A DNA stretch of 64,000 nucleotides. It comes from Monocercomonoides exilis PA203. Lineage: Eukaryota; Protista; Preaxostyla. The DNA is taken from positions 1,054,001-1,118,000 of the forward strand of contig LSRY02000009.1 in the NCBI GenBank assembly GCA_001643675.2. Direction: 5' to 3'. The translations under genes and the position numbers were made by a program. Below, piece after piece: positions 820 to 40,429 of the stretch (position 1 is the stretch's first letter; the number at the start of each line of letters is the position of its first letter). Below the pieces are notes generated by a model, which did not search any database, had not been told where the DNA came from, and was given only the letters and a program-made list of their open reading frames with translations.

Positions 820-1137
820 TTAATTATGGTTCAATTTCTAAATTTTTTTTTTGATATTCTTCACAACGACACTTTTTTCAACATCAACAACAATTTTTTT
901 ATAAATACACATAATTCAGTTTTATTAAAAAATCTTTGAGAAATATTGAAAAATCGATATTATATGATCAAAAATTCAATTTTTCAATGAAAAATGAACC
1001 CATTAAGAGACAAAATGCAATTTAATATATTTGGTCCTGTGATTATATGCAATGAAAAATAAATGGAAATAAATTCAAAAAATGTTATAATAAACAAATG
1101 TGTTTGTGCTCGATGTGATTATTTCCTGTTTTGACTG
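820..1137. mobile_element. Truncated pogo/Tc1-mariner-like MITE (right TIR only; inverted partial copy at 19055-19202)
   Basis: Ends GATGTGATTATTTCCTGTTTTGACTG|TA and is homologous to the right part of 22076-22524. Confidence 0.65.
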
Positions 1138-1867
1138 TATTGTTTTTTGGGTGTGGATTTCAATAAAGTCTTTTTGTCACAATCTTGAAAATAATCATTG
1201 ACATGTGAAATACATCACAGCTATAACAGAAGCTTATGCACAAGATGAAAGAAAGATGAAGATATCTTTGTACGGTATTGTTTCTTCTCAGTGATCATTT
1301 GAAACCAATCACAACAAAACTTCACACAAAAATTATCAACATCCAAAATATTATTTCAATAACAATTACCCACATATCTTTCAAACAGTCCAAAGTGAGT
1401 TATTCATTTTGAACACTAACTTTTGATATTGGTGATTGTCTGTTTTGATGAATGAATGATTCTGTCAAAATTCACAAAAATCAGATTTTCCATTATCACC
1501 TCTGAAAGATATGAGAATTTTTGATGAAAATGTTTCTTTTCACTGTTGTGTTTATTGATTCCCATTGAAAATGCGGGATGCCCAACTATTGTGATGGTTC
1601 CAAATTTGGGACGAAATTTTTGGTTTTTTGAAAAATAATAAGGATTTGTTCACAACTTTTTCTGCAATTATTTCATAATAAATCTTCTGTAACAATGAAA
1701 AAAATTCAGAAAAATTCAAAAGTTGAGAAAAAAATTATAGGAAATATTGTGTGGAACAAAATTGGAAAATGATAAAATTTTATCCCAATTTGTTTTGAAC
1801 AGATACTCCTAAAATGGGCATGATCAAATCAGATTTTTGATTGAATCTTCTTATTTCCGATTTGACG

Positions 1868-4800
1868 ATGAATAAAGAACTTTCGAGCGAATTCTACAAA
1901 GCATTTGGAGAGCATCCGCAGAATTATTTGTCCTTGCCATTTCCAGTTCAGCTTGGGTGTGCTTGTGTTTTTGTGCTTTTGTTGTTGTTGAAATGGTGTT
2001 TTGTGGATTGGAACCTGGACTTCGAAGAGAAACTTCGTTTTTGCCGGCATTTGCGTCGAAGCCTCGAAACGTGATTCTTGTGGACTGCTTCCTCGAAGCG
2101 GTGTTTTCGAAAAACAGAGTTAAAGATGCATCATGTGATTGCGCAATTGATTGCCGCGGTGCTTTGGAAAAGGAGTATTTTGAAAGAGCGTTGGGATTGG
2201 TGCAGAGGCATTTTCCGCACAAAAAACTTGGGGCTTCATTCAAAATATACACACGAAATAAAATGCCGATGGTTTCGAATTTGATTTCATTATTTTTGTT
2301 ATTATTGATGAAGTTTTATCTTTGGCATTTTTTTTTTTTTTGAAATGTCTGTTAGGAAAAGATGGAGATTTCGAAAGAGCTTTTGCTGTTGGCAGCGATT
2401 TTGACAGTGCTGGAAGTTAATTCGCTGGCAGCTTCTATTTGTTCGATAAAGGAGATGCTGCTGAGTGCAATGGTATGTGTTTATTGTTTCATTCTATTCT
2501 TTCTTTATTTGTTAAAAAAATAATTTTTTTATAAATATTTTTGTGAATCATTGGGTGAATTTTATTGTTTGATATTAAAATTTGCACAACCTCAAATTTT
2601 GACTGAAGCCAAGATCTCGCCAAGGCGAAGGGGTTGCTGCGTATTTGAGCGCGCTTTTTGTAGGGTGCCAGAATGTTGTTGTGCATCTTCCGTCATTTGA
2701 TTCATCGCGAAGCGAAAACTCGCATCCGCTTGTTTACCCGCTCACCGAGAATATTGTTCGCTGTGGAGGGCAAAGCAAATGTGAGGAATCGAAGGCGGAG
2801 GATTCGTGTGGGGCAGTGTTGAGCGGCGGTGCAACTGGACGCAGCAGATGGCTGTTCCGGATTGGAAAAGAGGCAGAGTTGGAGAAGGACGAAGTTGAGA
2901 AGCTTCGAATTGTTCAATTTAGCGCAGAGCTTACGTTCCTTCTTGTTAAATATGTATGTTGGGGTTTTGAGAATAATTATGTGATTATTATTTTGTGATT
3001 ATCAAACTTTTTTCTTTTCTATCTATCTTTCTTTTTTATTTGTGTGTGTGTGTGTGTGTGTGATTTCATTTTTTTTTAAAATGCAAATGATGATTTTTGG
3101 TGTGTTATTCATTTATTTTTGTGAATATGTGTGGATGTGAAAATGAGTAGAACTTGCATGAGAAACATTACCCCAGGCTTCTGCTGAACGAGATGACGCA
3201 CCCGGGCACGCTGACTGAGCAGAATACACAAAGAGAAGGAGGGATGGATGTGATATGGGAAGCGGTGGAGGAAATGAAGAAGAAAGTGAAAGGAGCAGAA
3301 TTCTCAATAGAAGAGAAGGAAAAGAAAGGAAAAGAAGGAGATGAAAAGGGCTGTGTTGCAACGATTGGAGCAGTGAAGGCAGCGTATCCGTTGCTTGGAA
3401 CACTGATTGATGAGCTTGTTGAGCAATATCTGGGGAAGGAACAAAAATTGCCATTGGAGTCTTCATCTGTTTTGTCTTCGTTGGATCTGATAAATCCGTT
3501 TGTCTACTGCATGAAGAACTGTGCAAGAGATGCGTGGCTGCCTGTGAGTGCATTGCCGTGGACTGGGGTTGAAAAGAATGGAAAAGCAGAAAAAGGGATT
3601 TGTTTGTGTGAATCGGTCAGATGTTGTGGCGGGAAGGAGTTTCATTGGCCGGGAATTCCGCAGAAGACTGAGAAGAAACAAGAAGAATGTGCTTTCTTCT
3701 TTCTGGAGGGGAGTTGCGTATACAAAGTGGAGGCTGTGAAGGATGGGGGCAATGGATGCAGCGTGGAAACGGCGGGGAAAGCGAGTTCGGAAGGAAAAGA
3801 ACGGAGTTCTTCGAGTTGTGGTTCAGAAAATGAGGTGTTCCCTCTTTCGTCTGGGATTTGTGTTGCACCGCTTTCACTGGTTGAGATTGTTTCGAAAAAG
3901 ATGACAGAATTTTCTGAATGGAATCAGAAACTGACAGATTTTTCTTCTGCTTCTGCTTCTGCTTCTGCTTCTGCTTCTGCTCCTTCGGGTTCTTCGGGTT
4001 CTTCCACTTTTCATTCGCTCGTTTATTCTCTGTGCCAAACATTCACAAAGGATGAGCCTGATCTCAAGTCGGTCAAAACAGATGCCACTGCTCTTTTAGG
4101 TATGATTGAGAGGATTCTACCTGCTGAGCGCCAAAAGCGAGGCTTTTTTGATTCGCTGAGGGAATTGCGTGCGGCTGTGAATGCGCTGCGCTTGCCTTCA
4201 TGTGTGTGTGCGCGGGGAAACGATTGCAGCGGAAAAGAAGGCGAAAGAAAAGCCGAGAAGGAAGAGAAGGAAGAGAAGGAAGAGAAGGAAGAGAAGGAAG
4301 AGAAGGAAGAGAAGGAAGAGAAGGAGAATGGCAAACAACAGGAAAGGGAAGCGATTAAGAAGGAATCGGAGTCGTTGGCCTTCTTGCTCCGCCCCATACC
4401 GCCTCCTTCTTTATTCCTCCCAGCTTCGCTTTTGACTTCTTCTGTTGATAATGAGAGCGTGTCTGTTGCGCAGTCGTCCTCAATTGAGTCAAGCGATCCG
4501 CCAAAAATTGCGCTTGTGACAGGAGCAGCTGGCTTTATTGGGTCTTGGGTGTGCCACAGACTTCTGATGAGCGGGGTTGCTGTGATTGCAGTTGACTCGC
4601 TGAATGATTTTTATTCATCGTCAATCAAGGAACATGCGATTGCAAGGCTGGAAGAAGTGGCTCGTGCGGTTGGAGGGAAGAGATGGAAAGAAGAGAGAGG
4701 AGGAGAAAAGAAAGAGGCAGGAAGTGAAGACAGCAACGGAACAGGGGTTATATCGCTTTTGACGAATTTTGTGTTCATTTACCACGATTTGCGAGACAAA

Positions 4801-6068
4801 GAAGGATTTCACGCGAAAATTGAAAAAGCATACAAATATGTCACTGGAGTGAAATGTCCTGTTTCAGAGGACAAAGCGAATGATAATAGCCAGATTCATT
4901 CAGAATCGAAAACGAAAGTGCGCATTCCGTATATTGTTCATCTGGCAGCGCGTGCTGGTGTTCGGTCGTCGATGCTGTATCCGGAGCTTTTCAGATCAGA
5001 AAATGTGTTGACGACACAAAATGTGTTTGAGCTGGCTGTGGGAGACTGGAGCGATGGGAAGAGAGGAGAAGGGTGGGGCACACAGAGCATTGTGTATGCC
5101 TCTTCAAGTTCTGTGTATGGAAAGATGAAAGACGGACTTTGTGCAGAGCATCTTTGCGTTGGGCCACCTGAATGCATATACGCGGATACAAAAGTGTGAA
5201 GAGATGTGTGAGTGAGAAAGTTGAATGCTTTTGTATATTTATTTGTGGTTGTAAGATAACTTGAGGATATTGTTGAGTCTTTTTTCATTTTTCATTTTTC
5301 ATTTTTGCATTCTTCCTTCCTTGTTTCACAAAAGGTTGAAAACGAAAGGCAAGCCGCTGAATTTATATCGAAATTAACCCACACTCCCATGATATCAACA
5401 ACAGCGCCTCCTTCTCCTCCCGTGTCCACATTCATTCCATCTTCAGTGCTTGCGCACTCGCCAATTCCACCTGTCTTCACAGGGCTCCGATTTTTCACTG
5501 TTGATGGCGAGGTGCTGGGCAGCTCGGCAATGGGGCGGATTGACATGGCGATTCCCTGCTTCACTCGGATGCTGCATTCAGAAGGGAAGGAGAAAGTGAC
5601 GATGTATGGGGACGGGTCGTTCAGAAGGGATTATACGAATGTGAGGGACATTGTGGATGGAATATGCCTGAGCTTGGACAGAGCAGAGCGATTGAGGAGC
5701 CAGATGAGAAAAGAGAAAGAATTGGCGCTCTCGAAAGAAAGAAGTGCAGAAGAAGAGAAAAGCGAGAAAACGAGTTTAACTACGGGTTTGTCTGGCAGTT
5801 CGTCAGTTGCAGTGGAAGACTTGCTGAGAGTGTTCAATTTGGGAGAGGACCATTCGACTTCTGTGAGGCAGCTTATTGTTCAATTAGCGAAGGAAATGGG
5901 GATGTTCAGCAAGGAGACGATTTCAGCTATTAAAGAGAAAGTGAAGCACGAAGTGACTGAAGAAGAGTTTGCATTCATTTATTTGCTTGATTGTTGTTCA
6001 TGAGAATATTTAATATTTGGGGAATGGGCATATATGTATATTCCCATTTGAATATCAAAAAAATCTTT

Positions 6069-6111
<43 letters not shown>

Positions 6112-7219
6112 TTTTTTGTTTCCTTTCATTCGGTGTTATTTCATCTGGGAAAACGAATGCACTGTATTTTTTTTTCATTTATGAAATGAATGTCTGATTT
6201 TTAGTTTGCTGCAATATCTTCTCGAGCGGGAATATGTTGCTTCTGTTACGCCGCCTCCAGGTGATATTCCGATCTGCATCACATCTCTCACGCGATCCCG
6301 TTCAGAGTTGCGTTATTCGCCAACTTTTTCAATGGATGAGAATTTGCATGCATGCGTTCATGATACGTTCAATGAAAAGGTGTATGAGAGTTCGATATTT
6401 GCTCACAGACAGACAAGTTGCAATTCGAAAGGAAAAGGGAGTGAATGGCTTAGTGCCAATAACTGTTCTCATTCTGGTGAAGAATGCACAGAGCTGTCTC
6501 TGCATCCATCTAATTGTTGCACGTTGAATTGTTTGTTGGCAACGCTTGCATCTCTTAAATCCTTCTTTTCCTCGCATCTCCTGAACCAAATTAACCTCTT
6601 TTTGTCCCTTCCTCTTCCGCAGCAGACAACGATCCTTTCTTCTTTCCTGCTGCGCTTTGGTCTGAACACGCACCAGGCTCATCCTTCGTCAAAGGAGCCC
6701 GCTTTCCTGCCAATTGCAGAGCTATCTGCTGTTGAAGAGCACGCATTGCTTGGATGGGATGGAAAGCGTGTTAAGGTTCTGGGAGAGGCTGGAAATGAGG
6801 CGGAGAAAGCTGAAGATGGACAGTTGAGCTATTCAAAGCAGCTGGAGAAGATTGGAAAGGGGAAAGCAAGAGGGTCATATGGAGGTGCAGGGTTGTTTTA
6901 TTTGAATCCTTTGTTTGTTCCTGGAGAAGGGGAGGAAGAAGGGAAGAAGAGCGGGTCACAATCGGAGATCAGTTGCCCATCTACAAGAAAGAATGAGGAT
7001 ATGAACACAGAAAAATGTGAAAGTGTATTTGTGGACAAAGCACATCTTTTCACTCTGGGAGACTTTGTGTTTTTGGCATGTGTGTTTGAGCAAATGTGGG
7101 TTGAATGCAATGGGATTGAAGGTAACGTTGCTGGGGAAGCGAAGCAGGCGCTTCTCGAAATGGTGGTTGAAGCTTTCAATAGAATGCTTCAGCTTATTTA
7201 TCAGGTTGCTAATAAATAA
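1868..7219 (+). CDS. Multi-exon gene (~1494 aa): degenerate GHMP/galactokinase-like N-terminus fused to an NAD-dependent epimerase (UDP-glucuronate 4-epimerase-like extended SDR)
   Basis: Exons 1868-1956, 2028-2271, 2356-2472, 2609-2953, 3151-5193, 5335-5966 and 6205-7219 join in frame across GT-AG introns (4485 nt). Motifs: VTGAAGFIG, DSLNDFY, HLAARAGVRSS, YASSSSVYG, YADTK (YxxxK), GLRFFTV, RDYTNVRDIVDG, VFNLG. Confidence 0.85.
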
Positions 7220-7666
7220 TTCCTTCAAATGAAAGAACAGAAATTGACACACTCGTTAATTGGGTATTTATAACTCGAAATATCTATCTATTTATTTATT
7301 TTGACAATTAAAGTTTGAGAGATTTAGTTTCTGTTGATCTTTATTTTAATGTTTGCTTTTATATTTAAAGTTAAGCGCAATCCTTTTGTTGGATTGCACA
7401 AACAATCAAGTTATGCCTGTCAAATTTGATTTTTTTCCCCTCCCCTTTTAATCTGTCAATGGCAAATTGACAAACGAGTCAATTTTGCTTGTCATTTCTC
7501 ATATATTTTTTTCAAAGGTTCTTTCCTTTAATTTCAAAAACTTGAATATGCTGTTTCATTAATGCAATATGAGGAACTTGTGAAGTTTTTTATTCTTGAC
7601 AAATTTTGATTGGATTTGTCGCAAAGCGTCAGATGTGGAAATTGAATTGACACAATTTTTGAAATA

Positions 7667-8850
7667 GGGTGGTTTTTTTATCCGGACTTTTTTTATCCGG
7701 ACAAAAATTTAAAATTAAAATATCTCAACAAATATTCAATATTAATTTAGGCATAAACATACAAAACGCGTACCAAAAATTTTCACTAAATAATAACAAC
7801 GGAAGTTCTGTTTTATGATTCTGTTAATATTCACTTCGTAACATCTTGCGAAAAGTGATGTGAGTGAAAAAAGATCAAAAAATATTTTCGCAAAAAATTT
7901 ATAAAAATTATTATGTTTATGGTTCAAATTCCGAGGAATCTTCTCCTGTTCCAGCTCCAAAAGGATCTGAATCCTCGCTTTCTGATTTTAAAAGTTCTTC
8001 TTCAGTATCCTCTTCATCTCTAATTCCTAAAAGGTCATTTATATCAGGAATTTCTTCGTTTTCATCAACTTCATCATCATCAATTTCCAATTCAAATTCA
8101 TCTTCAGATTGAAAATTTATTACTTTTTCGATGAATTCTCCGTAGGAAAGTAAACCTGATCTTTTAACAATGAACGTTGCAAGCACTCCAGGAATAAACC
8201 GCTCTCTCACTCCATATCTTGGAAAAAAAGATCGCAAATGTGCCCACATTCCTTCGATAGAGTTCGTATTGGCTTTTGTAACGGGGTCAACGTAATGACG
8301 TTTGTGGCAGACGGTTTGGTGGGTGTAACCAATTTCTCCTAAGCAAGTGTATGCTTTCCACTCGTCGCTGATTATTGTTGTTCCTTCTTTGATTATATTT
8401 TTAATTATAGGGATTAATGTCTCTTTTTTTCGATTAGGCACAATGACCACAAATTTTTTTCCTAATTCTTCTTCACTTTTTCGTTCGACAGCTCCAAATA
8501 TCCACATCAATTTTTTCTGCTTTCCTAATTCAAAAATAGTTATTTTCACAACAAATAAATTAATATAAATGTTTTCAATATTAATATACGATGTTAAAAC
8601 CTTTTTGTATTTCCGTCTCCTCCATGCGGCTTCATCAATTTCTACTATTTTGCCTGCCCCTCCAATTTTTTCATTTCTGTAATTTAAGTGATTTCACGCA
8701 GTCGACCTTGCAACGCTTGTCCAGTACCCAATCGTCATTTGAGATACATTTAACATCATGCCAATTTGTCAATCTTTGATTTCAAGCCAAAACATCAAAA
8801 GAATCATCATCACAGTGGAAATAGGGGCATAAGTGTAACAAAATACCTCC
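7667..8850 (-). mobile_element. Merlin (IS1595/ISXO2-like DDE) transposon remnant, 5'-truncated, copy 1
   Basis: Motifs KIGGAGKIVEIDE, WIFGAVER, GTTIISDEWKAY, HQTVCHKRHYVDP, NTNSIEGMW. Putative terminus at 7667 is GGGTGG(TTTTTTTATCCGGAC)x2. There are in-frame TGA stops upstream, and one A-run is a base shorter than in copy 2. Confidence 0.85.
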
Positions 8851-9699
8851 TTCAATTTAACGATTTTTCACATAAAAATAAAAATGAAATAAATGACATA
8901 AAAAAGCAACACTTTTGGGTGGAGCAGTTTTTTGAGATATCAAAAAAATTTTTTATCTAAAAAATTTTTGTGATCAATCCCATAATAAAATTTTCATATT
9001 TATCTTTAGAGTTTTCAATGCGAATGCTTTTGAATTGAAGATCATACAGCATATTGATCAAAACAATTTATAAAAAGAAGCAAAATGTTTGTGTATTTTC
9101 TCCTTTTTTATCTCTTTTGAAACATATTTTTATTATGTTTTTATATGTTGAAAGTTTCCATATGCTTCTTGTTCATTTTTTTTTAAACTGTTAGAATTAA
9201 TTTCACTTGTATGAAAAAATGCTCTTTTTTGTATTATATGTTTATCCTTTTGTTATACAGTGAAATTAACAGAATGCTCTTTAAAACGCAAAAAACAAAA
9301 TAGAAAAGCTTTATGGATCGAGAAAAATAATCTAACCATTTTCTAGGGTTTTTTATAAGCATTGGTCCAGGTAATGTTGAAACGATTATAAGAAATGTGT
9401 CACATGAAAAATATTTACAGAATTTATGTTTTATTTTGTTATTTTAGCGCTTATATTGAACAATCAAAAAGAAATTTCTTTCTTGTTTTTTCGTTTAATT
9501 CCAATAAACAGAGCTTTAAAAAAATTATTGAATGAAAACTTTTAATAATTTATTATCGTTGGATAAATCTGTGAATATTTTTTATTGAGTTGATAAGATT
9601 AAAAATTCATGAATTTGATATCTTTTTTATTTTCTCGTAATAAAAGGTGCGTTTTCAATGACAAATAATTCATTGGTAGTTGATGGAGTTTTATCAAAA

Positions 9700-10900
9700 C
9701 CGCGCTTGCGGAAGATGATTAATTTGCAACCAGTTTCAACTTTGTTAATGTGGAATTTTTTGTTCAAACAAAAATGAAGTATGTATTCGGTCTTCAAAAT
9801 AAACCATGTGAATGGTGTTTCTGCTTTTGCTTCTGCTGTTTATCTGCTGATTGAAAAAGATGCATCTCCTCATCTGCTGATAACTTGCTATCGCTGGTAC
9901 CTTCTTAAAACTTTTTCAGCAGTTGAATGACCAGCATTGTGTTAAAGAAATTGTTGAATATGCACAGTGTTCACTTTTCTCTCAGATCAACATCCAACAG
10001 TTTCAGCGCTTTTTTATAGTGGAAAACTTTGACTCTGCTCATGGAATGATGGAATACGAAATACTTCTACTGTGATGGCACATGTGCACCACTGACAAAT
10101 TGCTTATGCGTCTGGGATGAAATTCTCGACAAGAGGATATTTTCTTTTGATGGCTCTGCATGAGAAGGTTTGACAGTGGCTGCAGGTGTCGAGAAGATGA
10201 ACGAAGAAAGCAAGACGACAGTATCTGGTAATGAAATTGCTGCTGTTGTACTTGGAAAAATACTTGCATTAAAGAAGAGGAAGAAGAGAAAAAAAAAGAA
10301 GAAAAAGAGAAATTGGAAAAAGGATTATGAAATTTCGTCTGAAGAAACAAGAAAAAGAAATGAATAGAAATGAACCATCAAACTTGGAGTTATCAGCTGT
10401 TCCGCAATTCCACTCTTTTTATTGTTTTGGTTGTTGAGTCGCATTGTTGGAAATGATGCTGCTTCAATTAAAGAATGCATCATTTGCTCTGCAATTAGTG
10501 GCGGTGTTGCCATCGAAAAAGAAGAAAAAGATGAATCTAATACTATTCATCCAAGAATATGGAGGAAGGAAACATATCGCTGCACCATTATAGGAAGTTG
10601 AATTTGATGTCAATTTGATATTTTCAAATTGGCAATCATTAACCAGAAATTTAGTTGACTTGTTTTGTGGAGGATAATTGAATGTGAGAGAACCAGCAGA
10701 ATCACCACCTGAATTTGAGATGCACTTGCATTTGGAAAATTAGATTTGAAAATTTGTATTATCATGTCCAAGAGCAGAATATCAACAAGTTCCTCACCAA
10801 TCAGTTATTTTGCAATGCTCCACTCTGTTTTCTGAGAAGGTCCAATCAGAATTTGGTTGTGAATGGTTAACGAACGCTATTTTTCCATGAACAGCAGAAT
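9700..10900 (-). pseudogene. Fragment of a beta-helix/pectin-lyase-like repeat protein gene in the IR1 spacer
   Basis: Minus-strand pieces such as SAGSLTFNYPPQ..VNDCQFENI..NGAAICF..FFDGNTATNCRANDAFF, broken by stops. The family call rests on recalled resemblance only. Confidence 0.4.
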
Positions 10901-11319
10901 CGGTCTCGTATTAAAAATAGACAGTAAAGACATTAATAAAATATATTTAAAACACAGTTCCACTTAATGGAAAAAATGCATTGCATCAAAAACAGAAAGT
11001 GACAGCGCAATTCCAACATATAAATATATAATAAAAATATGTTTCAAAAGAGATAAAAAAGGAGAAAATACACAAACATTTTGCTTCTTTTTATAAATTG
11101 TTTTGATCAATATGCTGTATGATCTTCAATTCAAAAGCATTCGCATTGAAAACTCTAAAGATAAATATGAAAATTTTATTATGGGATTGATCACAAAAAT
11201 TTTTTAGATAAAAAATTTTTTTGATATCTCAAAAAACTGCTCCACCCAAAAGTGTTGCTTTTTTATGTCATTTATTTCATTTTTATTTTTATGTGAAAAA
11301 TCGTTAAATTGAAGGAGGT

Positions 11320-12499
11320 ATTTTGTTACACTTATGCCCCTATTTCCACTGTGATGATGATTCTTTTGATGTTTTGGCTTGAAATCAAAGATTGACAAAT
11401 TGGCATGATGTTAAATGTATCTCAAATGACGATTGGGTACTGGACAAGCGTTGCAAGGTCGACTGCGTGAAATCACTTAAATTACAGAAATGAAAAAATT
11501 GGAGGGGCAGGCAAAATAGTAGAAATTGATGAAGCCGCATGGAGGAGACGGAAATACAAAAAAGGTTTTAACATCGTATATTAATATTGAAAACATTTAT
11601 ATTAATTTATTTGTTGTGAAAATAACTATTTTTTGAATTAGGAAAGCAGAAAAAATTGATGTGGATATTTGGAGCTGTCGAACGAAAAAGTGAAGAAGAA
11701 TTAGGAAAAAAATTTGTGGTCATTGTGCCTAATCGAAAAAAAGAGACATTAATCCCTATAATTAAAAATATAATCAAAGAAGGAACAACAATAATCAGCG
11801 ACGAGTGGAAAGCATACACTTGCTTAGGAGAAATTGGTTACACCCACCAAACCGTCTGCCACAAACGTCATTACGTTGACCCCGTTACAAAAGCCAATAC
11901 GAACTCTATCGAAGGAATGTGGGCACATTTGCGATCTTTTTTTCCAAGATATGGAGTGAGAGAGCGGTTTATTCCTGGAGTGCTTGCAACGTTCATTGTT
12001 AAAAGATCAGGTTTACTTTCCTACGGAGAATTCATCGAAAAAGTAATAAATTTTCAATCTGAAGATGAATTTGAATTGGAAATTGATGATGATGAAGTTG
12101 ATGAAAACGAAGAAATTCCTGATATAAATGACCTTTTAGGAATTAGAGATGAAGAGGATACTGAAGAAGAACTTTTAAAATCAGAAAGCGAGGATTCAGA
12201 TCCTTTTGGAGCTGGAACAGGAGAAGATTCCTCGGAATTTGAACCATAAACATAATAATTTTTATAAATTTTTTGCGAAAATATTTTTTGATCTTTTTTC
12301 ACTCACATCACTTTTCGCAAGATGTTACGAAGTGAATATTAACAGAATCATAAAACAGAACTTCCGTTGTTATTATTTAGTGAAAATTTTTGGTACGCGT
12401 TTTGTATGTTTATGCCTAAATTAATATTGAATATTTGTTGAGATATTTTAATTTTAAATTTTTGTCCGGATAAAAAAAGTCCGGATAAAAAAACCACCC
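11320..12499 (+). mobile_element. Merlin (IS1595/ISXO2-like DDE) transposon remnant, copy 2
   Basis: Same DDE motifs. Intron 11565-11641 joins RKYKKG to KQKKLMWIFG. In-frame TGA at 11393 and 11468; stop at 12249; putative terminus ends 12499. Confidence 0.85.
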
Positions 12500-14064: not shown

Positions 14065-14113
<49 letters not shown>

Positions 14114-17100
14114 AAAGATTTTTTGATATTCAAATGGGAATATACATATATGCCCATTCCCCAAATATTAAATATTCTCATGAACAACAATCAAGCAAAT
14201 AAATGAATGCAAACTCTTCTTCAGTCACTTCGTGCTTCACTTTCTCTTTAATAGCTGAAATCGTCTCCTTGCTGAACATCCCCATTTCCTTCGCTAATTG
14301 AACAATAAGCTGCCTCACAGAAGTCGAATGGTCCTCTCCCAAATTGAACACTCTCAGCAAGTCTTCCACTGCAACTGACGAACTGCCAGACAAACCCGTA
14401 GTTAAACTCGTTTTCTCGCTTTTCTCTTCTTCTGCACTTCTTTCTTTCGAGAGCGCCAATTCTTTCTCTTTTCTCATCTGGCTCCTCAATCGCTCTGCTC
14501 TGTCCAAGCTCAGGCATATTCCATCCACAATGTCCCTCACATTCGTATAATCCCTTCTGAACGACCCGTCCCCATACATCGTCACTTTCTCCTTCCCTTC
14601 TGAATGCAGCATCCGAGTGAAGCAGGGAATCGCCATGTCAATCCGCCCCATTGCCGAGCTGCCCAGCACCTCGCCATCAACAGTGAAAAATCGGAGCCCT
14701 GTGAAGACAGGTGGAATTGGCGAGTGCGCAAGCACTGAAGATGGAATGAATGTGGACACGGGAGGAGAAGGAGGCGCTGTTGTTGATATCATGGGAGTGT
14801 GGGTTAATTTCGATATAAATTCAGCGGCTTGCCTTTCGTTTTCAACCTTTTGTGAAACAAGGAAGGAAGAATGCAAAAATGAAAAATGAAAAATGAAAAA
14901 AAGACTCAACAATATCCTCAAGTTATCTTACAACCACAAATAAATATACAAAAGCATTCAACTTTCTCACTCACACATCTCTTCACACTTTTGTATCCGC
15001 GTATATGCATTCAGGTGGCCCAACGCAAAGATGCTCTGCACAAAGTCCGTCTTTCATCTTTCCATACACAGAACTTGAAGAGGCATACACAATGCTCTGT
15101 GTGCCCCACCCTTCTCCTCTCTTCCCATCGCTCCAGTCTCCCACAGCCAGCTCAAACACATTTTGTGTCGTCAACACATTTTCTGATCTGAAAAGCTCCG
15201 GATACAGCATCGACGACCGAACACCAGCACGCGCTGCCAGATGAACAATATACGGAATGCGCACTTTCGTTTTCGATTCTGAATGAATCTGGCTATTATC
15301 ATTCGCTTTGTCCTCTGAAACAGGACATTTCACTCCAGTGACATATTTGTATGCTTTTTCAATTTTCGCGTGAAATCCTTCTTTGTCTCGCAAATCGTGG
15401 TAAATGAACACAAAATTCGTCAAAAGCGATATAACCCCTGTTCCGTTGCTGTCTTCACTTCCTGCCTCTTTCTTTTCTCCTCCTCTCTCTTCTTTCCATC
15501 TCTTCCCTCCAACCGCACGAGCCACTTCTTCCAGCCTTGCAATCGCATGTTCCTTGATTGACGATGAATAAAAATCATTCAGCGAGTCAACTGCAATCAC
15601 AGCAACCCCGCTCATCAGAAGTCTGTGGCACACCCAAGACCCAATAAAGCCAGCTGCTCCTGTCACAAGCGCAATTTTTGGCGGATCGCTTGACTCAATT
15701 GAGGACGACTGCGCAACAGACACGCTCTCATTATCAACAGAAGAAGTCAAAAGCGAAGCTGGGAGGAATAAAGAAGGAGGCGGTATGGGGCGGAGCAAGA
15801 AGGCCAACGACTCCGATTCCTTCTTAATCGCTTCCCTTTCCTGTTGTTTGCCATTCTCCTTCTCTTCCTTCTCTTCCTTCTCTTCCTTCTCTTCCTTCTC
15901 TTCCTTCTCTTCCTTCTCTTCCTTCTCTTCCTTCTCGGCTTTTCTTTCGCCTTCTTTTCCGCTGCAATCGTTTCCCCGCGCACACACACATGAAGGCAAG
16001 CGCAGCGCATTCACAGCCGCACGCAATTCCCTCAGCGAATCAAAAAAGCCTCGCTTTTGGCGCTCAGCAGGTAGAATCCTCTCAATCATACCTAAAAGAG
16101 CAGTGGCATCTGTTTTGACCGACTTGAGATCAGGCTCATCCTTTGTGAATGTTTGGCACAGAGAATAAACGAGCGAATGAAAAGTGGAAGAACCCGAAGA
16201 ACCCGAAGGAGCAGAAGCAGAAGCAGAAGCAGAAGCAGAAGCAGAAGAAAAATCTGTCAGTTTCTGATTCCATTCAGAAAATTCTGTCATCTTTTTCGAA
16301 ACAATCTCAACCAGTGAAAGCGGTGCAACACAAATCCCAGACGAAAGAGGGAACACCTCATTTTCTGAACCACAACTCGAAGAACTCCGTTCTTTTCCTT
16401 CCGAACTCGCTTTCCCCGCCGTTTCCACGCTGCATCCATTGCCCCCATCCTTCACAGCCTCCACTTTGTATACGCAACTCCCCTCCAGAAAGAAGAAAGC
16501 ACATTCTTCTTGTTTCTTCTCAGTCTTCTGCGGAATTCCCGGCCAATGAAACTCCTTCCCGCCACAACATCTGACCGATTCACACAAACAAATCCCTTTT
16601 TCTGCTTTTCCATTCTTTTCAACCCCAGTCCACGGCAATGCACTCACAGGCAGCCACGCATCTCTTGCACAGTTCTTCATGCAGTAGACAAACGGATTTA
16701 TCAGATCCAACGAAGACAAAACAGATGAAGACTCCAATGGCAATTTTTGTTCCTTCCCCAGATATTGCTCAACAAGCTCATCAATCAGTGTTCCAAGCAA
16801 CGGATACGCTGCCTTCACTGCTCCAATCGTTGCAACACAGCCCTTTTCATCTCCTTCTTTTCCTTTCTTTTCCTTCTCTTCTATTGAGAATTCTGCTCCT
16901 TTCACTTTCTTCTTCATTTCCTCCACCGCTTCCCATATCACATCCATCCCTCCTTCTCTTTGTGTATTCTGCTCAGTCAGCGTGCCCGGGTGCGTCATCT
17001 CGTTCAGCAGAAGCCTGGGGTAATGTTTCTCATGCAAGTTCTACTCATTTTCACATCCACACATATTCACAAAAATAAATGAATAACACACCAAAAATCA

Positions 17101-18324
17101 TCATTTGCATTTTAAAAAAAAATGAAATCACACACACACACACACACACAAATAAAAAAGAAAGATAGATAGAAAAGAAAAAAAGTTTGATAATCACAAA
17201 ATAATAATCACATAATTATTCTCAAAACCCCAACATACATATTTAACAAGAAGGAACGTAAGCTCTGCGCTAAATTGAACAATTCGAAGCTTCTCAACTT
17301 CGTCCTTCTCCAACTCTGCCTCTTTTCCAATCCGGAACAGCCATCTGCTGCGTCCAGTTGCACCGCCGCTCAACACTGCCCCACACGAATCCTCCGCCTT
17401 CGATTCCTCACATTTGCTTTGCCCTCCACAGCGAACAATATTCTCGGTGAGCGGGTAAACAAGCGGATGCGAGTTTTCGCTTCGCGATGAATCAAATGAC
17501 GGAAGATGCACAACAACATTCTGGCACCCTACAAAAAGCGCGCTCAAATACGCAGCAACCCCTTCGCCTTGGCGAGATCTTGGCTTCAGTCAAAATTTGA
17601 GGTTGTGCAAATTTTAATATCAAACAATAAAATTCACCCAATGATTCACAAAAATATTTATAAAAAAATTATTTTTTTAACAAATAAAGAAAGAATAGAA
17701 TGAAACAATAAACACATACCATTGCACTCAGCAGCATCTCCTTTATCGAACAAATAGAAGCTGCCAGCGAATTAACTTCCAGCACTGTCAAAATCGCTGC
17801 CAACAGCAAAAGCTCTTTCGAAATCTCCATCTTTTCCTAACAGACATTTCAAAAAAAAAAAAAATGCCAAAGATAAAACTTCATCAATAATAACAAAAAT
17901 AATGAAATCAAATTCGAAACCATCGGCATTTTATTTCGTGTGTATATTTTGAATGAAGCCCCAAGTTTTTTGTGCGGAAAATGCCTCTGCACCAATCCCA
18001 ACGCTCTTTCAAAATACTCCTTTTCCAAAGCACCGCGGCAATCAATTGCGCAATCACATGATGCATCTTTAACTCTGTTTTTCGAAAACACCGCTTCGAG
18101 GAAGCAGTCCACAAGAATCACGTTTCGAGGCTTCGACGCAAATGCCGGCAAAAACGAAGTTTCTCTTCGAAGTCCAGGTTCCAATCCACAAAACACCATT
18201 TCAACAACAACAAAAGCACAAAAACACAAGCACACCCAAGCTGAACTGGAAATGGCAAGGACAAATAATTCTGCGGATGCTCTCCAAATGCTTTGTAGAA
18301 TTCGCTCGAAAGTTCTTTATTCAT
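12948..18324 (-). CDS. Second (inverted) copy of the GHMP-like/epimerase fusion gene
   Basis: Mirror of 1868-7219 within IR1. Coding exons stay open, with one extra EEK repeat unit. Confidence 0.85.
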
Positions 18325-19202
18325 CGTCAAATCGGAAATAAGAAGATTCAATCAAAAATCTGATTTGATCATGCCCATTTTAGGAGTATCTGTTCAAAAC
18401 AAATTGGGATAAAATTTTATCATTTTCCAATTTTGTTCCACACAATATTTCCTATAATTTTTTTCTCAACTTTTGAATTTTTCTGAATTTTTTTCATTGT
18501 TACAGAAGATTTATTATGAAATAATTGCAGAAAAAGTTGTGAACAAATCCTTATTATTTTTCAAAAAACCAAAAATTTCGTCCCAAATTTGGAACCATCA
18601 CAATAGTTGGGCATCCCGCATTTTCAATGGGAATCAATAAACACAACAGTGAAAAGAAACATTTTCATCAAAAATTCTCATATCTTTCAGAGGTGATAAT
18701 GGAAAATCTGATTTTTGTGAATTTTGACAGAATCATTCATTCATCAAAACAGACAATCACCAATATCAAAAGTTAGTGTTCAAAATGAATAACTCACTTT
18801 GGACTGTTTGAAAGATATGTGGGTAATTGTTATTGAAATAATATTTTGGATGTTGATAATTTTTGTGTGAAGTTTTGTTGTGATTGGTTTCAAATGATCA
18901 CTGAGAAGAAACAATACCGTACAAAGATATCTTCATCTTTCTTTCATCTTGTGCATAAGCTTCTGTTATAGCTGTGATGTATTTCACATGTCAATGATTA
19001 TTTTCAAGATTGTGACAAAAAGACTTTATTGAAATCTACACCCAAAAAACAATACAGTCAAAACAGGAAATAATCACATCGAGCACAAACACATTTGTTT
19101 ATTATAACATTTTTTGAATTTATTTCCATTTATTTTTCATTGCATATAATCACAGGACCAAATATATAAAATTGCATTTTGTCTCTTAATGGGTTCATTT
19201 TT

Positions 19203-19530
19203 GGAGATATGGTATTTCAAATATAGATCCAACCGGGCTGGATCAGTGATATTGATTAATTTATCCATGCTACTGCAATACTTGATATTTCAATAAAAAG
19301 TTATAGAAGAGCTGTGGTATGAGATTTATGGACATAGTATTGCTTTTGTTTCATTGTTTATTGTGAGGTGATATGCAATGTATATGAGCAATTATATAAA
19401 TAAATGGTTGAATACAGTACTATAGTCCTTGTTATAGATAAATCGTGAATGTGTAAGTAGTTTGATAAATTAATGATGAGAAAACTGATGTATAGGTCCG
19501 GTCGATCTATATTTGAAATATCATATCTCC
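19203..19530. mobile_element. ~328 bp MITE with 27-bp TIRs (possibly MULE-type), copy 1
   Basis: GGAGATATGGTATTTCAAATATAGATC ... GATCTATATTTGAAATATCATATCTCC (1 mismatch). No TSD visible. The MULE guess rests only on the GAGATA terminus shared with maize Mu. Confidence 0.8.
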
Positions 19531-19663
19531 AGGAAAATTGATAGTTTTAACCATGTTTTAAGTCAATAAGTATTATCAGCATTGTGAATTGACATGTGGG
19601 AATGAATGCGTGTATTGAAAAATAATTATCAATATTTTTCTTATAACAAAGTTTAAAAAGCTG

Positions 19664-19879
19664 ATGGGAAGAAAGAAGATATATGCAACTGTTGAAGAAG
19701 CTAAGGAAGCACAACAGAGACAGATAAAACAGTATCAGGAAAGATGTAAGCAACAAACAAAGTATTACAAAGAACATGTGTCTGAGAAACAGAAGAATAT
19801 AATAAAGATTCTGAGAAGAAAGATAATAGAAGACGAGGATGTATTAGATGAGATAATGAAAAGAGTGGAACAAAAATAA
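19664..19879 (+). CDS. Small basic helical protein, 71 aa (MGRKKIYATVEEAKEAQ...), function unknown
   Basis: Clean ATG-TAA ORF with purine-rich, coding-like composition; the protein is K/R/E/Q-rich. Confidence 0.55.
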   Translation: MGRKKIYATVEEAKEAQQRQIKQYQERCKQQTKYYKEHVSEKQKNIIKILRRKIIEDEDVLDEIMKRVEQK

Positions 19880-20229
19880 GTGGTGAATGCAATTGTGCGT
19901 GAATGAACGTGAATATTTTTATCAATTGATGTTAAGCTGGGTCATTGTTTGTTGGTTTATGTTTGACTTTTTGAACACACCATGGTAATACATCACTGAA
20001 TACAATGAATTCGAGAAGAGGTGCAAATGACATGAAGTAAATTAACAGTGAGCATATGACAGGGAGAGTCGGGTTTGTTTGAATACAAATCAGAACACAA
20101 AATGGTAGGAATAACATGTAGTGAAAGAACAGTATGTTTACAATATCGTGCATGTGGTATGTTTGTATATGTGTTTTAAAATTAATTAAAAATAAAATAA
20201 GGAATCTGCGTTGTTTTGAGTGTGATTGC

Positions 20230-20291
20230 ATTATGTCAGTATATTATGTCAGTATATTATGTCAGTATATTATGTCAGTATATTATGTCAG
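20230..20291. repeat. 13-bp tandem repeat (TATTATGTCAGTA) x ~5; mirror at 24367-24428
   Basis: Directly visible. Confidence 0.95.
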
Positions 20292-20327
20292 CGACTTACA
20301 TAAATAATATTGCATATATTGTCATTA

Positions 20328-21295
20328 GAACTTGATTGATTTGACTGCATCAAGTGGCATTAGATCGGTCAACATCCAATGAGATCGATCTAATGCCATT
20401 AAGATGCAGTCAAATTGGATGTGACTCAGTCACATCCGATCATTTCCATTCTGGGTTTCAAGATCAAAGTATTTTTTTTTTTAAAAATGATAATAAAAAT
20501 TGATAATTTCCGTTTTATTTTATATCATTTTGATTGAATTAAATAATTTTTCACTCTAAATAGTTTTTTTATTTTGTTAGTAATAAAAAATTGTTGATAT
20601 ATTTCGGAAAAACCTAAAAATTCTAATTGTTTTTGTTTGATATTAATTATTGATGATTTATAAAAAATGATATAAGAAAATTTCATCTCATTTTTCAATA
20701 TTAAGAACTAGTTTCATTTGTTTTTCACATTTCTCAAAAATTTTCAGAAAAAGAAAAAATACAAAAAAGAAGCTTTCGAATCATATATTCTTTTTATTTT
20801 TCATTCGAAAGAAAAAATATCAAAAAATGATTGATTCATAAACACATAACAGTCAAGAAAACACAAAAAGTTTAATTTTTTATAAATGTTGAAAATTTTT
20901 CAAAAAAACTGAATATGAAAATGTTAATAATGAAATATATTTACAGTTTCATCTCGATTTTAGTTGAAAAAGTTCGTTGCAGAGTCGCAATGATAAATAA
21001 ATCAAGTTTTCAAATTGCTGAATTAACTAAAGAAAACAACAAAAAATCAAACAAACATCAAAATAATGTATTTTAAACAATAACATATTGAAAATTCAAT
21101 GTTTACAAACTTGTTATAATAAAAATATTAATAAAACAAAAAAATGCTCGATCACAATTCGTGATCATAAAAATCACAATTTCGCCCTTTGTGAGATTGA
21201 GGGAAATTCGAAAAAAATTAGCAAAATTCGATAAACCAGACAAAATTGATTTGACTGAGTCACATTTTCGCGACTCAGTCAAATCAATCAAGTTC
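20328..21295. mobile_element. ~970 bp non-autonomous TIR element with hairpin-forming ends, copy 1
   Basis: TA|GAACTTGATTGATTTGACTG ... CAGTCAAATCAATCAAGTTC|TA. The perfect inverted repeat spans 20324-20347 / 21276-21299 and the interior is AT-rich and non-coding. Confidence 0.75.
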
Positions 21296-21306
21296 TAATT
21301 AAGACT

Positions 21307-21515
21307 GCACAGTTAGTCTAGTGGTATGGTCAAGTACCTTGTTAATGAGAGGTTACAGGTTCGAGTCCGGGTCGAGCCAATAATGTTTCTCAAAAACAAA
21401 GTATAAGATCCTTGTGGGCTGGCCACCTACATGTCCACTAAAAGCTGGAGGTTATAAATAATGGTGCATCTGTTCCAATAATAACAATTACAATAACAAT
21501 AACAAAAAAGCTTTT
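21307..21515 (+). ncRNA. tRNA-derived Pol III unit / SINE-like sequence (degenerate tRNA head 21307-21379)
   Basis: A-box TAGTCTAGTGG (21314-21324) and B-box GGTTCGAGTCC (21358-21368). Stems are mispaired. A CAATAA-like/A-rich tail precedes the first TTTT at 21512. Confidence 0.6.
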
Positions 21516-21694
21516 AGGAGCTTTCTCAAGAAACCTCCAGCTCAGCTTGAGTTTTGCTATTTTATTTGTTAACCACATGTTACCTAATTGAAGCGTGTAT
21601 CCTGAATTGATTATAAACGATAAGTAGTAATGTGTTTGTTCAAATAGCTGCATGTGTGGAATGGGTTTATTCAACAAAAGTCTCAGGTCAGAAA

Positions 21695-21950
21695 TGTCAC
21701 CGGATAAATTCTGTGTGGAGAAAATGTTCTAAAACCCATTCCAGAAAGTGTCACCGGATAGTGTGACCAACTTCTTGAATGGAGAAAATGTTCTAAATCC
21801 TATTCTAGAAGTCGGTCACTGTCACCAGAAGTGTCACCGGATGAGATTTAATCCAGTGACAGTACTTCTGACATGGAGATTTGCTCATGAAACTCCGCAC
21901 CAGAAGTGTCACCGGTGTCACCGGATGAGGACTCTTCGGGTCCGGGGTAT
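21695..21950. repeat. GTCACCGG motif array followed by a GC hairpin (array mirrored at 22725-22957)
   Basis: Five GTCACCGG plus variants, a duplicated TGGAGAAAATGTTCTAAA block, then GGACTCTTCGGGTCC and GGGGTAT. Confidence 0.8.
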
Positions 21951-22075
21951 ATGTATACACAAATATATATTTAACAATATATTTTTAACAATAACGTTTA
22001 TTGACGTATACAGTAAATAAACAGTAAATAGACATATACACTTTCGAGATACTTTCATGAGTTTATTAACGTATA

Positions 22076-22524
22076 CAGTCTAAACCAGATATAATCACAT
22101 CTGTTTTTGCAGGACTTTTTGTGACTATATCCGATTGTGAAAATATCCGATGCTGCTTAACACAGAAATAAATAATAATTTATAAATAAATATATTTATT
22201 CTTGGTCAATTTTTAATTTTTGAAAATTCTTCATTAAAACGCATTTTTCAATAGAAAAAACAATTATTAATGTTTCATTATGTTATTCAGACTTATTTAA
22301 ACATTATTTTGAAAAATGGATTTTTTGAATTTTTTGATCAAAAAACCGATTTTTCAATGAAAAAATCATCCATCATAATTAAAAATGTGACTATCTCTTT
22401 TCAGCACTGTGATTATATGCGATGAAAAATGAATGAAAAATAGGCCAAAAATGTCGGTGCATGGAAAAATGTGACTATAAACGAATGTGATTGTATTTGA
22501 TGTGATTATATCCGGTTTTGACTG
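22076..22524. mobile_element. pogo/Tc1-mariner-like MITE (449 bp) in the IR2 spacer
   Basis: TA|CAGTCTAAACCAGATATAATCACATC ... GATGTGATTATATCCGGTTTTGACTG|TA: 26-bp imperfect TIR, CAGT terminus, TA duplication. Confidence 0.85.
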
Positions 22525-23136
22525 TACAATTTATGAATAAAACTGGTAAGATATACTGTTTATTGTTATAATATTTATGAAAACTACTGGTAAGATAAAT
22601 ATAACAATAATATTTATGATAGTTACTGATGTTCATTAAAACTTATAATCATTTCTATTAATATATTTTACGTAATAAATCAATTACTCTCTGTTTTATA
22701 TCTCACATAAAAATGAAGAAGCTCCATCCGGTGACACCGGTGACACTTCTGGTGCGGAGTTTCATGAGCAAATCTCCATGTCAGAAGTACTGTCACTGGA
22801 TTAAATCTCATCCGGTGACACTTCTGGTGACAGTGACCGACTTCTAGAATAGGATTTAGAACATTTTCTCCATTCAAGAAGTTGGTCACACTATCCGGTG
22901 ACACTTTCTGGAATGGGTTTTAGAACATTTTCTCCACACAGAATTTATCCGGTGACATTTCTGACCTGAGACTTTTGTTGAATAAACCCATTCCACACAT
23001 GCAGCTATTTGAACAAACACATTACTACTTATCGTTTATAATCAATTCAGGATACACGCTTCAATTAGGTAACATGTGGTTAACAAATAAAATAGCAAAA
23101 CTCAAGCTGAGCTGGAGGTTTCTTGAGAAAGCTCCT

Positions 23137-23345
23137 AAAAGCTTTTTTGTTATTGTTATTGTAATTGTTATTATTGGAACAGATGCACCATTATTTATAA
23201 CCTCCAGCTTTTAGTGGACATGTAGGTGGCCAGCCCACAAGGATCTTATACTTTGTTTTTGAGAAACATTATTGGCTCGACCCGGACTCGAACCTGTAAC
23301 CTCTCATTAACAAGGTACTTGACCATACCACTAGACTAACTGTGC
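23137..23345 (-). ncRNA. Mirror copy of the tRNA-derived unit
   Basis: Reverse complement of 21307-21515. Confidence 0.6.
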
Positions 23346-23356
23346 AGTCTTAATTA

Positions 23357-24330
23357 GAACTTGATTGATTTGACTGAGTCGCGAAAATGTGACTCAGTCA
23401 AATCAATTTTTGTCTGGTTTATCGAATTTTGCTAATTTTTTTTCGAATTTCCCTCAATCTCACAAAGGGCGAAATTGTGATTTTTATGATCACGAATTGT
23501 GATCGAGCATTTTTTTGTTTTATTAATATTTTTATTATAACAAGTTTGTAAACATTGAATTTTCAATATGTTATTGTTTAAAATACATTATTTTGATGTT
23601 TGTTTGATTTTTTGTTGTTTTCTTTAGTTAATTCAGCAATTTGAAAACTTGATTTATTTATCATTGCGACTCTGCAACGAACTTTTTCAACTAAAATCGA
23701 GATGAAACTGTAAATATATTTCATTATTAACATTTTCATATTCAGTTTTTTTGAAAAATTTTCAACATTTATAAAAAATTAAACTTTTTTGTGTTTTCTT
23801 GACTGTTATGTGTTTATGAATCAATCATTTTTTGATATTTTTTCTTTTCGAATGAAAAATAAAAAGAATATATGATTCGAAAGCTTCTTTTTTTGTATTT
23901 TTTCTTTTTTCTGAAAATTTTTGAGAAATGTGAAAAACAAATGAAACTAGTTCTTAATATTGAAAAATGAGATGAAATTTTCTTATATCATTTTTTATAA
24001 ATCATCAATAATTAATATCAAACAAAAACAATTAGAATTTTTAGGTTTTTCCGAAATATATCAACAATTTTTTATTACTAACAAAATAAAAAAACTATTT
24101 AGAGTGAAAAATTATTTAATTCAATCAAAATGATATAAAATAAAACGGAAATTATCAATTTTTATTATCATTTTTAAAAAAAAAAATACTTTGATCTTGA
24201 AACCCAGAATGGAAATGATCGGATGTGACTGAGTCACATCCAATTTGACTGCATCTTAATGGCATTAGATCGATCTCATTGGATGTTGACCGATCTAATG
24301 CCACTTGATGCAGTCAAATCAATCAAGTTC
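23357..24330. mobile_element. Same TIR element, copy 2
   Basis: Mirror within IR2. Confidence 0.75.
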
Positions 24331-24778
24331 TAATGACAATATATGCAATATTATTTATGTAAGTCGCTGACATAATATACTGACATAATATACTGACATA
24401 ATATACTGACATAATATACTGACATAATGCAATCACACTCAAAACAACGCAGATTCCTTATTTTATTTTTAATTAATTTTAAAACACATATACAAACATA
24501 CCACATGCACGATATTGTAAACATACTGTTCTTTCACTACATGTTATTCCTACCATTTTGTGTTCTGATTTGTATTCAAACAAACCCGACTCTCCCTGTC
24601 ATATGCTCACTGTTAATTTACTTCATGTCATTTGCACCTCTTCTCGAATTCATTGTATTCAGTGATGTATTACCATGGTGTGTTCAAAAAGTCAAACATA
24701 AACCAACAAACAATGACCCAGCTTAACATCAATTGATAAAAATATTCACGTTCATTCACGCACAATTGCATTCACCAC

Positions 24779-24994
24779 TTATTTTTGTTCCACTCTTTTC
24801 ATTATCTCATCTAATACATCCTCGTCTTCTATTATCTTTCTTCTCAGAATCTTTATTATATTCTTCTGTTTCTCAGACACATGTTCTTTGTAATACTTTG
24901 TTTGTTGCTTACATCTTTCCTGATACTGTTTTATCTGTCTCTGTTGTGCTTCCTTAGCTTCTTCAACAGTTGCATATATCTTCTTTCTTCCCAT
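24779..24994 (-). CDS. Second copy of the 71-aa basic protein
   Basis: Identical mirror ORF in IR2. Confidence 0.55.
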   Translation of the reverse strand: MGRKKIYATVEEAKEAQQRQIKQYQERCKQQTKYYKEHVSEKQKNIIKILRRKIIEDEDVLDEIMKRVEQK

Positions 24995-25127
24995 CAGCTT
25001 TTTAAACTTTGTTATAAGAAAAATATTGATAATTATTTTTCAATACACGCATTCATTCCCACATGTCAATTCACAATGCTGATAATACTTATTGACTTAA
25101 AACATGGTTAAAACTATCAATTTTCCT

Positions 25128-25454
25128 GGAGATATGATATTTCAAATATAGATCGACCGGACCTATACATCAGTTTTCTCATCATTAATTTATCAAACTA
25201 CTTACACATTCACGATTTATCTATAACAAGGACTATAGTACTGTATTCAACCATTTATTTATATAATTGCTCATATACATTGCATATCACCTCACAATAA
25301 ACAATGAAACAAAAGCAATACTATGTCCATAAATCTCATACCACAGCTCTTCTATAACTTTTTATTGAAATATCAAGTATTGCAGTAGCATGGATAAATT
25401 AATCAATATCACTGATCCAGCCCGGTTGGATCTATATTTGAAATACCATATCTC
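25128..25454. mobile_element. Same MITE, copy 2 (outer end of IR2)
   Basis: Mirror of 19204-19530; no TSD visible. Confidence 0.8.
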
Positions 25455-40340: not shown

Positions 40341-40429
40341 ATGCAGCCCCAACGGCAGAATCAACAAAGCCAAAGATGGAACCACCCGCCACACGCACAA
40401 ATTAATGAAGAAGATGTATCAATTGTAAC

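Follow-up and report, generated by a model that had tools for sequence, protein, structure and literature searches.

An inverted duplication of host DNA ends at the tip of a long-terminal-inverted-repeat element in Monocercomonoides exilis and recurs at a second locus

Foldback and other transposons with long terminal inverted repeats (TIRs), such as the FB elements of Drosophila, are known hot spots of rearrangement, and palindromes primed by short inverted repeats that fold back after a double-strand break are known from Tetrahymena rDNA, yeast and tumour models. In maize and rice, alternative transposition of Ac/Ds elements, in its reversed-ends and sister-chromatid forms, yields duplications with one breakpoint at an element end (PMC3744419, PMC3239180). 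The palindromes of primate and mouse sex chromosomes are kept alike by arm-to-arm gene conversion (PMC8600007, PMC8327919, PMC8981503). Here we describe a locus of the oxymonad Monocercomonoides exilis PA203 that belongs to these known kinds, an inverted duplication with a breakpoint at a transposon end and a palindrome kept alike by gene conversion. The locus lies in a 64-kb stretch (C91:1054001-1118000, hereafter the window) of an 82.3-Mb assembly of 101 contigs, and consists of an 18-kb palindrome of host DNA, A-S1-A', joined to the tip of a 6.25-kb mobile element, element U (Table 1).

The assembly was built from Oxford Nanopore reads (read N50 8.9 kb) using Canu, Nanopolish and ten rounds of Pilon, and its authors acknowledge poorer polishing of the multi-copy parts (PMC8767320). 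The strings 'palindrom' and 'inverted' never occur in the text of the genome paper (PMC8767320). As a read check, Logan contigs from four public runs, all of one sample that is probably the source strain, were aligned with window positions 17500-23499. An original prediction, made from the letters of the window, had described two giant palindromes (A/A' and B'/B) joined at a transposon terminus and had attributed both to a single recent rearrangement driven by a miniature inverted-repeat transposable element (MITE). A repeat search of the window recovered the layout of two inverted arm pairs, with arms 99.9-100% alike in both. The observation was confirmed and its interpretation was partly supported: only one of the two palindromes is a rearrangement, which corrects an attractive earlier reading.

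Arms A and A' are colinear inverted blocks, and the palindrome they form (990-19202) is a genuine inverted duplication made in place, in which 8.2 kb of host DNA is present in mirror orientation on either side of S1, a spacer of 1.86 kb. In a four-way alignment that included the two arms of the second locus described below, 8163 sites were aligned and A and A' were mismatched at 6 of them. At 990 the outer border of A falls inside an old repeat that has more than 30 genomic copies at about 72% and shows no break at 990. Because this repeat runs unbroken across the border, A and the DNA to its left (L) are contiguous native sequence and A' is the derived copy, as had been predicted. The possibility that the repeat forms a hairpin with a loop at about 979, explaining the break at 990, was rejected, as it folded no better than shuffled sequences (z +1.85). 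The predicted doubling of a metabolic gene was also borne out; an epimerase-family gene is present in both arms and has four copies in the genome. A search for a GHMP-kinase domain upstream of the epimerase gave no Pfam match even at E = 1. At the inner border an 11-nt inverted match (9141-9151 / 11013-11023) lies after two mismatches and would make a short, weak seed, and the inner 20-35 bp were degraded in all four A arms of the two loci.

The last base of A' is 19202. It is followed by a single G and then by the GAGATATGG terminus, which begins at 19204 and has its mirror terminus ending at 25454. The derived copy is therefore joined to a mobile-element terminus base-exactly, to within 1 bp, in agreement with the original prediction. 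The equivalent G was also found at the second locus, and one extra base was present at this place in two other copies of the element's family. A target-site duplication (TSD) was found at neither terminus when the flanks were compared; these (...CATTTTTG and TGCTATAG...) are unlike and have a 2-bp TG in common. We also looked for a TSD (CAGGAAAA) at the right end of S1, which would mark A' as inserted between TSD and tip, and it was absent.

Judged by its sequence, the unit B'-S2-B is one non-autonomous member of a long-TIR family that encodes a Prim-Pol/D5-helicase protein, and its 'arms' are its own TIRs. The exact 26-nt tip motif was found only in this lineage, at the two outer tips and two internal copies in the window and at two sites of the second locus; a tip copy on contig C41 has one mismatch (25/26 bases). 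A variant with three mismatches (23/26) bounds five discrete elements of 4.1-5.3 kb, L014-L018, and the tips of element U align with theirs over at least 70 bp. These five are full-size copies of the family, and the first 700 bp of element U aligned to family members with z scores of 16-27 against shuffles. The family TIRs are 833-1292 bp long with 99.3-100% identity in the five copies, and those of element U are 2.73 kb long, with 0 of 2046 aligned sites mismatched between 19204-21937 and 22715-25454 and homopolymer indels as the only differences. The arms of this pair were present as predicted, and their inner limits had been placed 10 bp short (21927/22725 instead of 21937/22715) owing to one mismatch.

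Both TIRs of all five full-size copies were matched by window positions 19664-19866 at 78-80% DNA identity. A block with a 71-aa open reading frame (ORF) sits 0.4-0.6 kb from the tip in the family copies and in the window alike, and at least 17 further paired copies of this block, 3-5 kb apart, were found in the genome. Roughly three quarters of the residues of the 71-aa ORF were identical by eye to the ORF at L016:769-990, and no homology was found between a 99-aa ORF in the arms of element U and a 167-aa ORF in the L016 TIRs. In the protein of the full-size copies a D5-type helicase domain (DUF5906/VapE-like; PHROG 'DNA primase') was recognised, and the N-terminal part gave a weak Prim-Pol-like signal. 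No transposase or integrase, including any DDE domain, was identified in the proteins of the full-size copies. No ORF for a central primase-helicase gene was found in 19204-25454, where the tested ORF had no Pfam match, and because this gene is absent element U is non-autonomous. The 'MITE' that had been placed at the joint is the terminal 326 bp of element U. This segment folds as a hairpin (DNA fold -51.6 kcal/mol, z -6.9) and resembles a MITE because it holds an internal inverted copy of the tip motif. As the TIRs of an element, B' and B need no rearrangement of their own, so that the two palindromes do not go back to one event, and at the level of the family the unit does occur elsewhere as discrete long-TIR copies.

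Of the five full-size copies, two had matching 7-mers adjoining the tips and, like the window with its G at 19203, an additional base on the left; 7-bp TSDs are possible for the family. In two copies, L015 (1-300 / 4668-4967) and L018 (2-300 / 4803-5102), the inverted repeat did not stop at either tip and covered the full 300 bp of flank retrieved (99.8-100%). Since the repeat continues beyond the tips, one host flank of these copies is an inverted copy of the other from the tip on. Element U resembles Drosophila FB elements in that near-identical, long inverted repeats make up most of its length, its centre is short, and nested insertions occur in both arms. Unlike FB elements, the full-size copies of this family encode the Prim-Pol-like and D5-type helicase protein, with one 71-aa ORF per TIR. 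A nested 975-bp repeat sits at the same place in both TIRs, which fits TIR homogenisation. Read contigs broke at the ends of this repeat and, from its other copies, ran from the repeat end into tRNA-like sequence, which suggests a tRNA-gene-targeting element. A MITE-centred core of element U was considered and rejected, as there was no inverted similarity between the two unique flanks of the MITE in S2.

A second A palindrome (locus P, C91:1511115-1542472) lies 457 kb from the window copy on the same contig and was compared by aligning the window to C91:1500001-1560000. The joint region 19150-19560 recurs there at C91:1541811-1542222. Locus P has the order L, A, S1, A', the same G, and then the terminus with about 600 bp of the element; its inner and outer borders are identical to those of the window, and the breakpoint at the transposon terminus is alike at both loci. 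Because the borders are identical, the palindrome and its joint arose once. Within arm A' of locus P lies an 11.5-kb transposon flanked by a TA target duplication. The two arms were mismatched at 6 sites in the window and at 10 in locus P, and any window arm differed from any arm of locus P at 21-24 sites. Sixteen sites split the four arms two against two, and 15 of these grouped the arms by locus, one grouped left against right arms and none was crossed (p = 8e-7). The lone left-against-right site, 9139, is 15 bp from the inner edge. At two of the 15 sites (18422 and 18702) read-contig depth split about 50:50 between the two states. The arms have evidently been homogenised within each locus by arm-to-arm gene conversion. 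Because the joint is shared with locus P and the 15 sites are alike within loci and different between them, the structure is old and not recent, contrary to the original prediction.

The spacer differed between the loci at 26 of 1857 sites (1.4%) and the arms at 21 of 8117; the arms were thus about five times less diverged than the spacer, and this held for their non-coding parts too. As in the sex-chromosome palindromes, multi-kb gene-bearing arms more than 99.9% identical surround a unique spacer, the arms are closer within a copy than between copies, and the spacer and inner edges are less conserved. Unlike those palindromes, the copies compared here are two paralogs in one protist genome and not copies of different species, and the arms measure 8 kb and not tens to hundreds of kb. 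The paralog serves as an internal control that multi-kb palindromes persist in an oxymonad genome, homogenised arm to arm in a manner best known from mammalian sex chromosomes. We know of no description of sex in this organism.

Divergence between the two loci changed abruptly at the joint. Arm A' was about 0.3% different, and in the tip region 19204-19800 the loci disagreed at 30 of 597 sites (5.0%; p = 4e-7 relative to adjacent single-copy DNA), the change lying somewhere between 19146 and 19212. Far upstream the loci were colinear at only 91-93%, and from about C91:1051280 to the joint they were 0.3-1.5% different. This pattern suggests that the paralogy is old and that one locus may later have received from the other a copied tract of about 22 kb with the palindrome. 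The end of this tract would be at the element tip, because the tip is the border between unlike and like sequence. As an alternative explanation of the tip divergence, the left tip of the window may have been overwritten by the right TIR.

The similarity of locus P to the window stops at window position 19800 against a TA-duplicating transposon. A third related locus (locus T, C91:1238322-1242913) begins at 19801, where it adjoins the opposite end of such a transposon. Between them the two loci supply both sides of a single insertion into window-like sequence, although 304 kb separates them and their order is 'wrong'. A simple tandem duplication and a single inversion were both rejected as origins of loci P and T, since neither accounts for how the two are ordered and oriented or for the initial 3.7 kb of inserted transposon that they share. 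Locus T has a palindrome of its own (C91:1239820-1242913, L009/L010) with 715-bp arms (99.4% by BLAST) and a 1665-bp spacer; both arms are identical over the 550 bp shared with window 21304-21853, and one of them ends at a border of the 975-bp repeat.

On its right side element U adjoins a truncated gene of a multigene family with at least 40 members, here called C. Homology to the closest C paralog (contig C2, 85%) begins with the base that directly follows the tip, a point that lies within a 280-codon ORF, and about 190 upstream codons found in that paralog are missing from the window copy. The missing 5' half would be expected beside the left tip of element U; it is absent there, no nearby copy was found, and the left flank of the C2 paralog is unrelated.

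Together these results point to a history in which a long-TIR element was probably resident in a C-family gene when an inverted duplication of host DNA became joined to its left tip, giving a composite that is old and has been homogenised at each locus. Element U would first have inserted in the C-family gene. Next, the DNA would have broken at the left tip of this element. After resection, the centromere-side end would have primed by fold-back at the right border of S1, A would have been copied back to position 990, and the product would have been end-joined to the intact tip. A' would in this way have replaced the left flank of the element, which comprised the C gene's 5' half and the TSD copy on the left, and this replacement would explain the missing TSD. 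The composite would then have been copied, or moved by a long conversion tract, to the locus 457 kb away, and the arms would have been homogenised at each locus. Like the fold-back palindromes known from other systems, the locus is a spacered inverted duplication, and loss of the DNA beyond the break and an inner border at a short inverted match may be further points in common. Unlike them, the arm is short and interstitial and is closed by a second joint at a transposon tip, with no extension to the chromosome end, and its seed (11 nt) is weak.

Several observations weigh against this history. No TSD flanks element U, so that an ordinary insertion is deduced and was not seen, and the family TSDs themselves rest on two AT-rich 7-mers. 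The exact 6.25-kb unit was not found as a separate copy in the genome, where there is only a partial paralog. No transposase or integrase was identified in the family, so that cleavage of the tip by an enzyme has to be assumed. As a seed for fold-back, the inner border offers only the 11-nt match behind two mismatches. The divergence of the tip region from its paralog (5.0%, against 0.3-1.9% for its neighbours) needs an extra event. Among the listed Logan contigs none bridged the S1 borders or the window's own A'|tip and tip|C joints.

An unlikely alternative is that a free linear copy of the element was captured, being ligated into a break in the C gene as one and the same repair event produced A' by fold-back, so that both tip joints would be products of end-joining. 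This would account for the lack of a TSD at either tip and for the state of both flanks, which are broken, A' ending in the old repeat and C starting within an exon. The Prim-Pol-like and D5-helicase domains without a recognisable transposase are likewise what is seen in plasmid- or virus-like linear replicons. However, the matching 7-mers at the tips of two of the five full-length copies suggest staggered-cut integration, and there was no sign of a free form of the element.

The mechanism of the original prediction, a single alternative transposition (one-ended or sister-chromatid) of a recently active MITE that made both palindromes and ligated the MITE end to position 990, fares much worse and is very improbable. 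It agrees with the one novel joint exactly at an element terminus without a TSD, a likeness to the Ac/Ds duplications, and with the near identity of all the arms. Against it, B' and B show the family tip, the sub-terminal ORF and the long-TIR architecture, and locus P has the A palindrome and joint with 15 differences common to both its arms. The tip motif is confined to this lineage, hence there is no active MITE family, and the family has the Prim-Pol-like and D5-type helicase protein, with no DDE transposase found. A simple later copy of a one-step product is ruled out by the divergence between the loci (5% in the tip region and 0.27% in A), which would otherwise be uniform. Unlike the Ac/Ds cases, only one novel joint lies at an element end here, there is no detectable hAT/DDE transposase and no 8-bp TSD, the second 'palindrome' is the TIR pair of the element, and the event is old.

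We regard it as similarly far-fetched that Nanopore fold-back chimeras or mis-joins built the palindromes in the Canu assembly. The read N50 is shorter than the 18-kb A palindrome and the multi-copy parts were less well polished (PMC8767320). Most arm-to-arm 'differences' were homopolymer indels, and two assembly errors were proven in A', where all four read sets gave A at 18962 and lacked the two T's at 19025-19026. Yet both palindromes have unique spacers (1857 and 777 bp), and the A structure is repeated at the second locus, where variants and transposon insertions are particular to that locus. The short-read contigs of the four runs bridged 19800/19808 and both borders of S2 (21937/21938 and 22714/22715), and one 1507-bp contig bridged the joint between A' and the terminus in the sequence variant of locus P. 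Unitig depths of about 409 in the A arms, 206 in the tip and 72-143 in the S2 flanks were in the ratio that the assembly predicts for 4, 2 and 1 copies, which is weak evidence since depth does not equal copy number. Least credible of all is a coincidence in which the A palindrome was already joined to C and the element later transposed exactly into that joint, for although this accounts for an intact element with both tips and for the TG shared by the flanks, the element would have had to land within 1 bp of a breakpoint already there and without the family's TSD of about 7 bp (a prior chance of about 1 in 10,000 per insertion in the region), and no locus with A' joined directly to C was found, only the C2 paralog (85%) with its unrelated left flank.

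The locus is one clean case of a host inverted duplication that ends at a mobile-element tip, in a genome whose published description is silent on palindromes, and it ties the breakpoint to a poorly understood primase-helicase long-TIR family. Alone, the case opens no new question. We tentatively raise the possibility, which we hold to be doubtful, that in Monocercomonoides the tips of Prim-Pol/D5-helicase long-TIR elements break repeatedly and thereby start inverted duplication of the host DNA beside them, because an 8-kb gene-bearing arm is joined at the tip here and, of the five full-size copies, two have an inverted repeat that extends beyond both tips. If this were true and general, a virus- or plasmid-like replicon without a recognisable transposase would drive palindromic gene amplification in this genome, and such palindromes would be maintained in Monocercomonoides by arm-to-arm conversion.

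Table 1. Coordinates of the features discussed (window positions unless a contig is given).
Feature	Position	Strand	Remarks
Old repeat of about 325 bp (MITE family)	817-1141		Spans the outer border of arm A at 990
Arm A (native)	990-9153	+	Carries the epimerase-family gene and a Merlin/IS1595 DDE remnant
NAD-dependent epimerase/dehydratase-family gene in arm A	ORFs 3154-5199 and 5305-6003		
Merlin/IS1595 DDE remnant in arm A	7917-8549	-	
Spacer S1	9154-11010		1857 bp; unique apart from a repeat of about 475 bp at 10389-10864; same borders in paralog P
Arm A' (derived inverted copy)	11011-19202	-	Outer end is the equivalent of position 990, within the old repeat
Single G between A' and GAGATATGG terminus	19203		Filler base or variable first base of the element
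Element U, non-autonomous long-TIR element	19204-25454		6.25 kb; left TIR 19204-21937, centre S2 21938-22714, right TIR 22715-25454
Internal inverted copy of tip motif	19504-19529	-	Mirror at 25129-25154
71-aa Lys/Glu-rich ORF, left TIR	19664-19879	+	Intact; conserved family ORF
975-bp repeat nested in left TIR	20326-21299		Mirror 23353-24332 in right TIR; at least 17 genomic copies at 79-89%
454-bp MITE in centre S2	22073-22526		Same family as the 817-1141 repeat
71-aa ORF, right TIR	24779-24994	-	Exact mirror of the left copy
C, last ~70 codons of a multigene-family exon	25455-25668	+	Cut exactly at the right tip of the element
Family copies L014-L018, 4.1-5.3 kb	C5:929643-933714, C12:852898-857264, C25:1027347-1032637, C55:259303-264497, C59:417580-422081		

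Further features were noted beside the main structures. The right tip of element U contributes 22 codons to a window ORF (25390-25668, plus strand) that continues in frame into the truncated C exon and could give rise to a chimeric transcript or protein. The C2 paralog is adjoined by a tyrosine-recombinase (Phage_integrase) ORF on the minus strand (L013:3187-4248; C2:1458187-1459248), and the C multigene family may be part of a Crypton- or DIRS-like element. A Merlin/IS1595-type DDE transposase remnant is present in both A arms (7917-8549 on the minus strand and 11656-12249 on the plus strand), near their inner ends and oriented away from the spacer.

The transposons with TA target duplications belong to a TIR family of 8-12.7 kb with TGTC...GACA ends, found at window 34035-42192, C91:1523788-1535293, C91:1542465 onward and C91:1225628-1238326. 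One copy lies in arm A' of locus P and one at the equivalent of window 19800/19801, inside the 71-aa ORF. Just left of the old repeat, in window 1-823 and the DNA upstream, an inverted pair of about 1 kb (C91:1052613-1053606 / 1053829-1054823) surrounds a spacer of about 220 bp. This pair (C91:1052613-1054823) is a foldback-like element with copies on contigs C23 and C34, and at the paralog it has about 19 kb of extra DNA in its centre.

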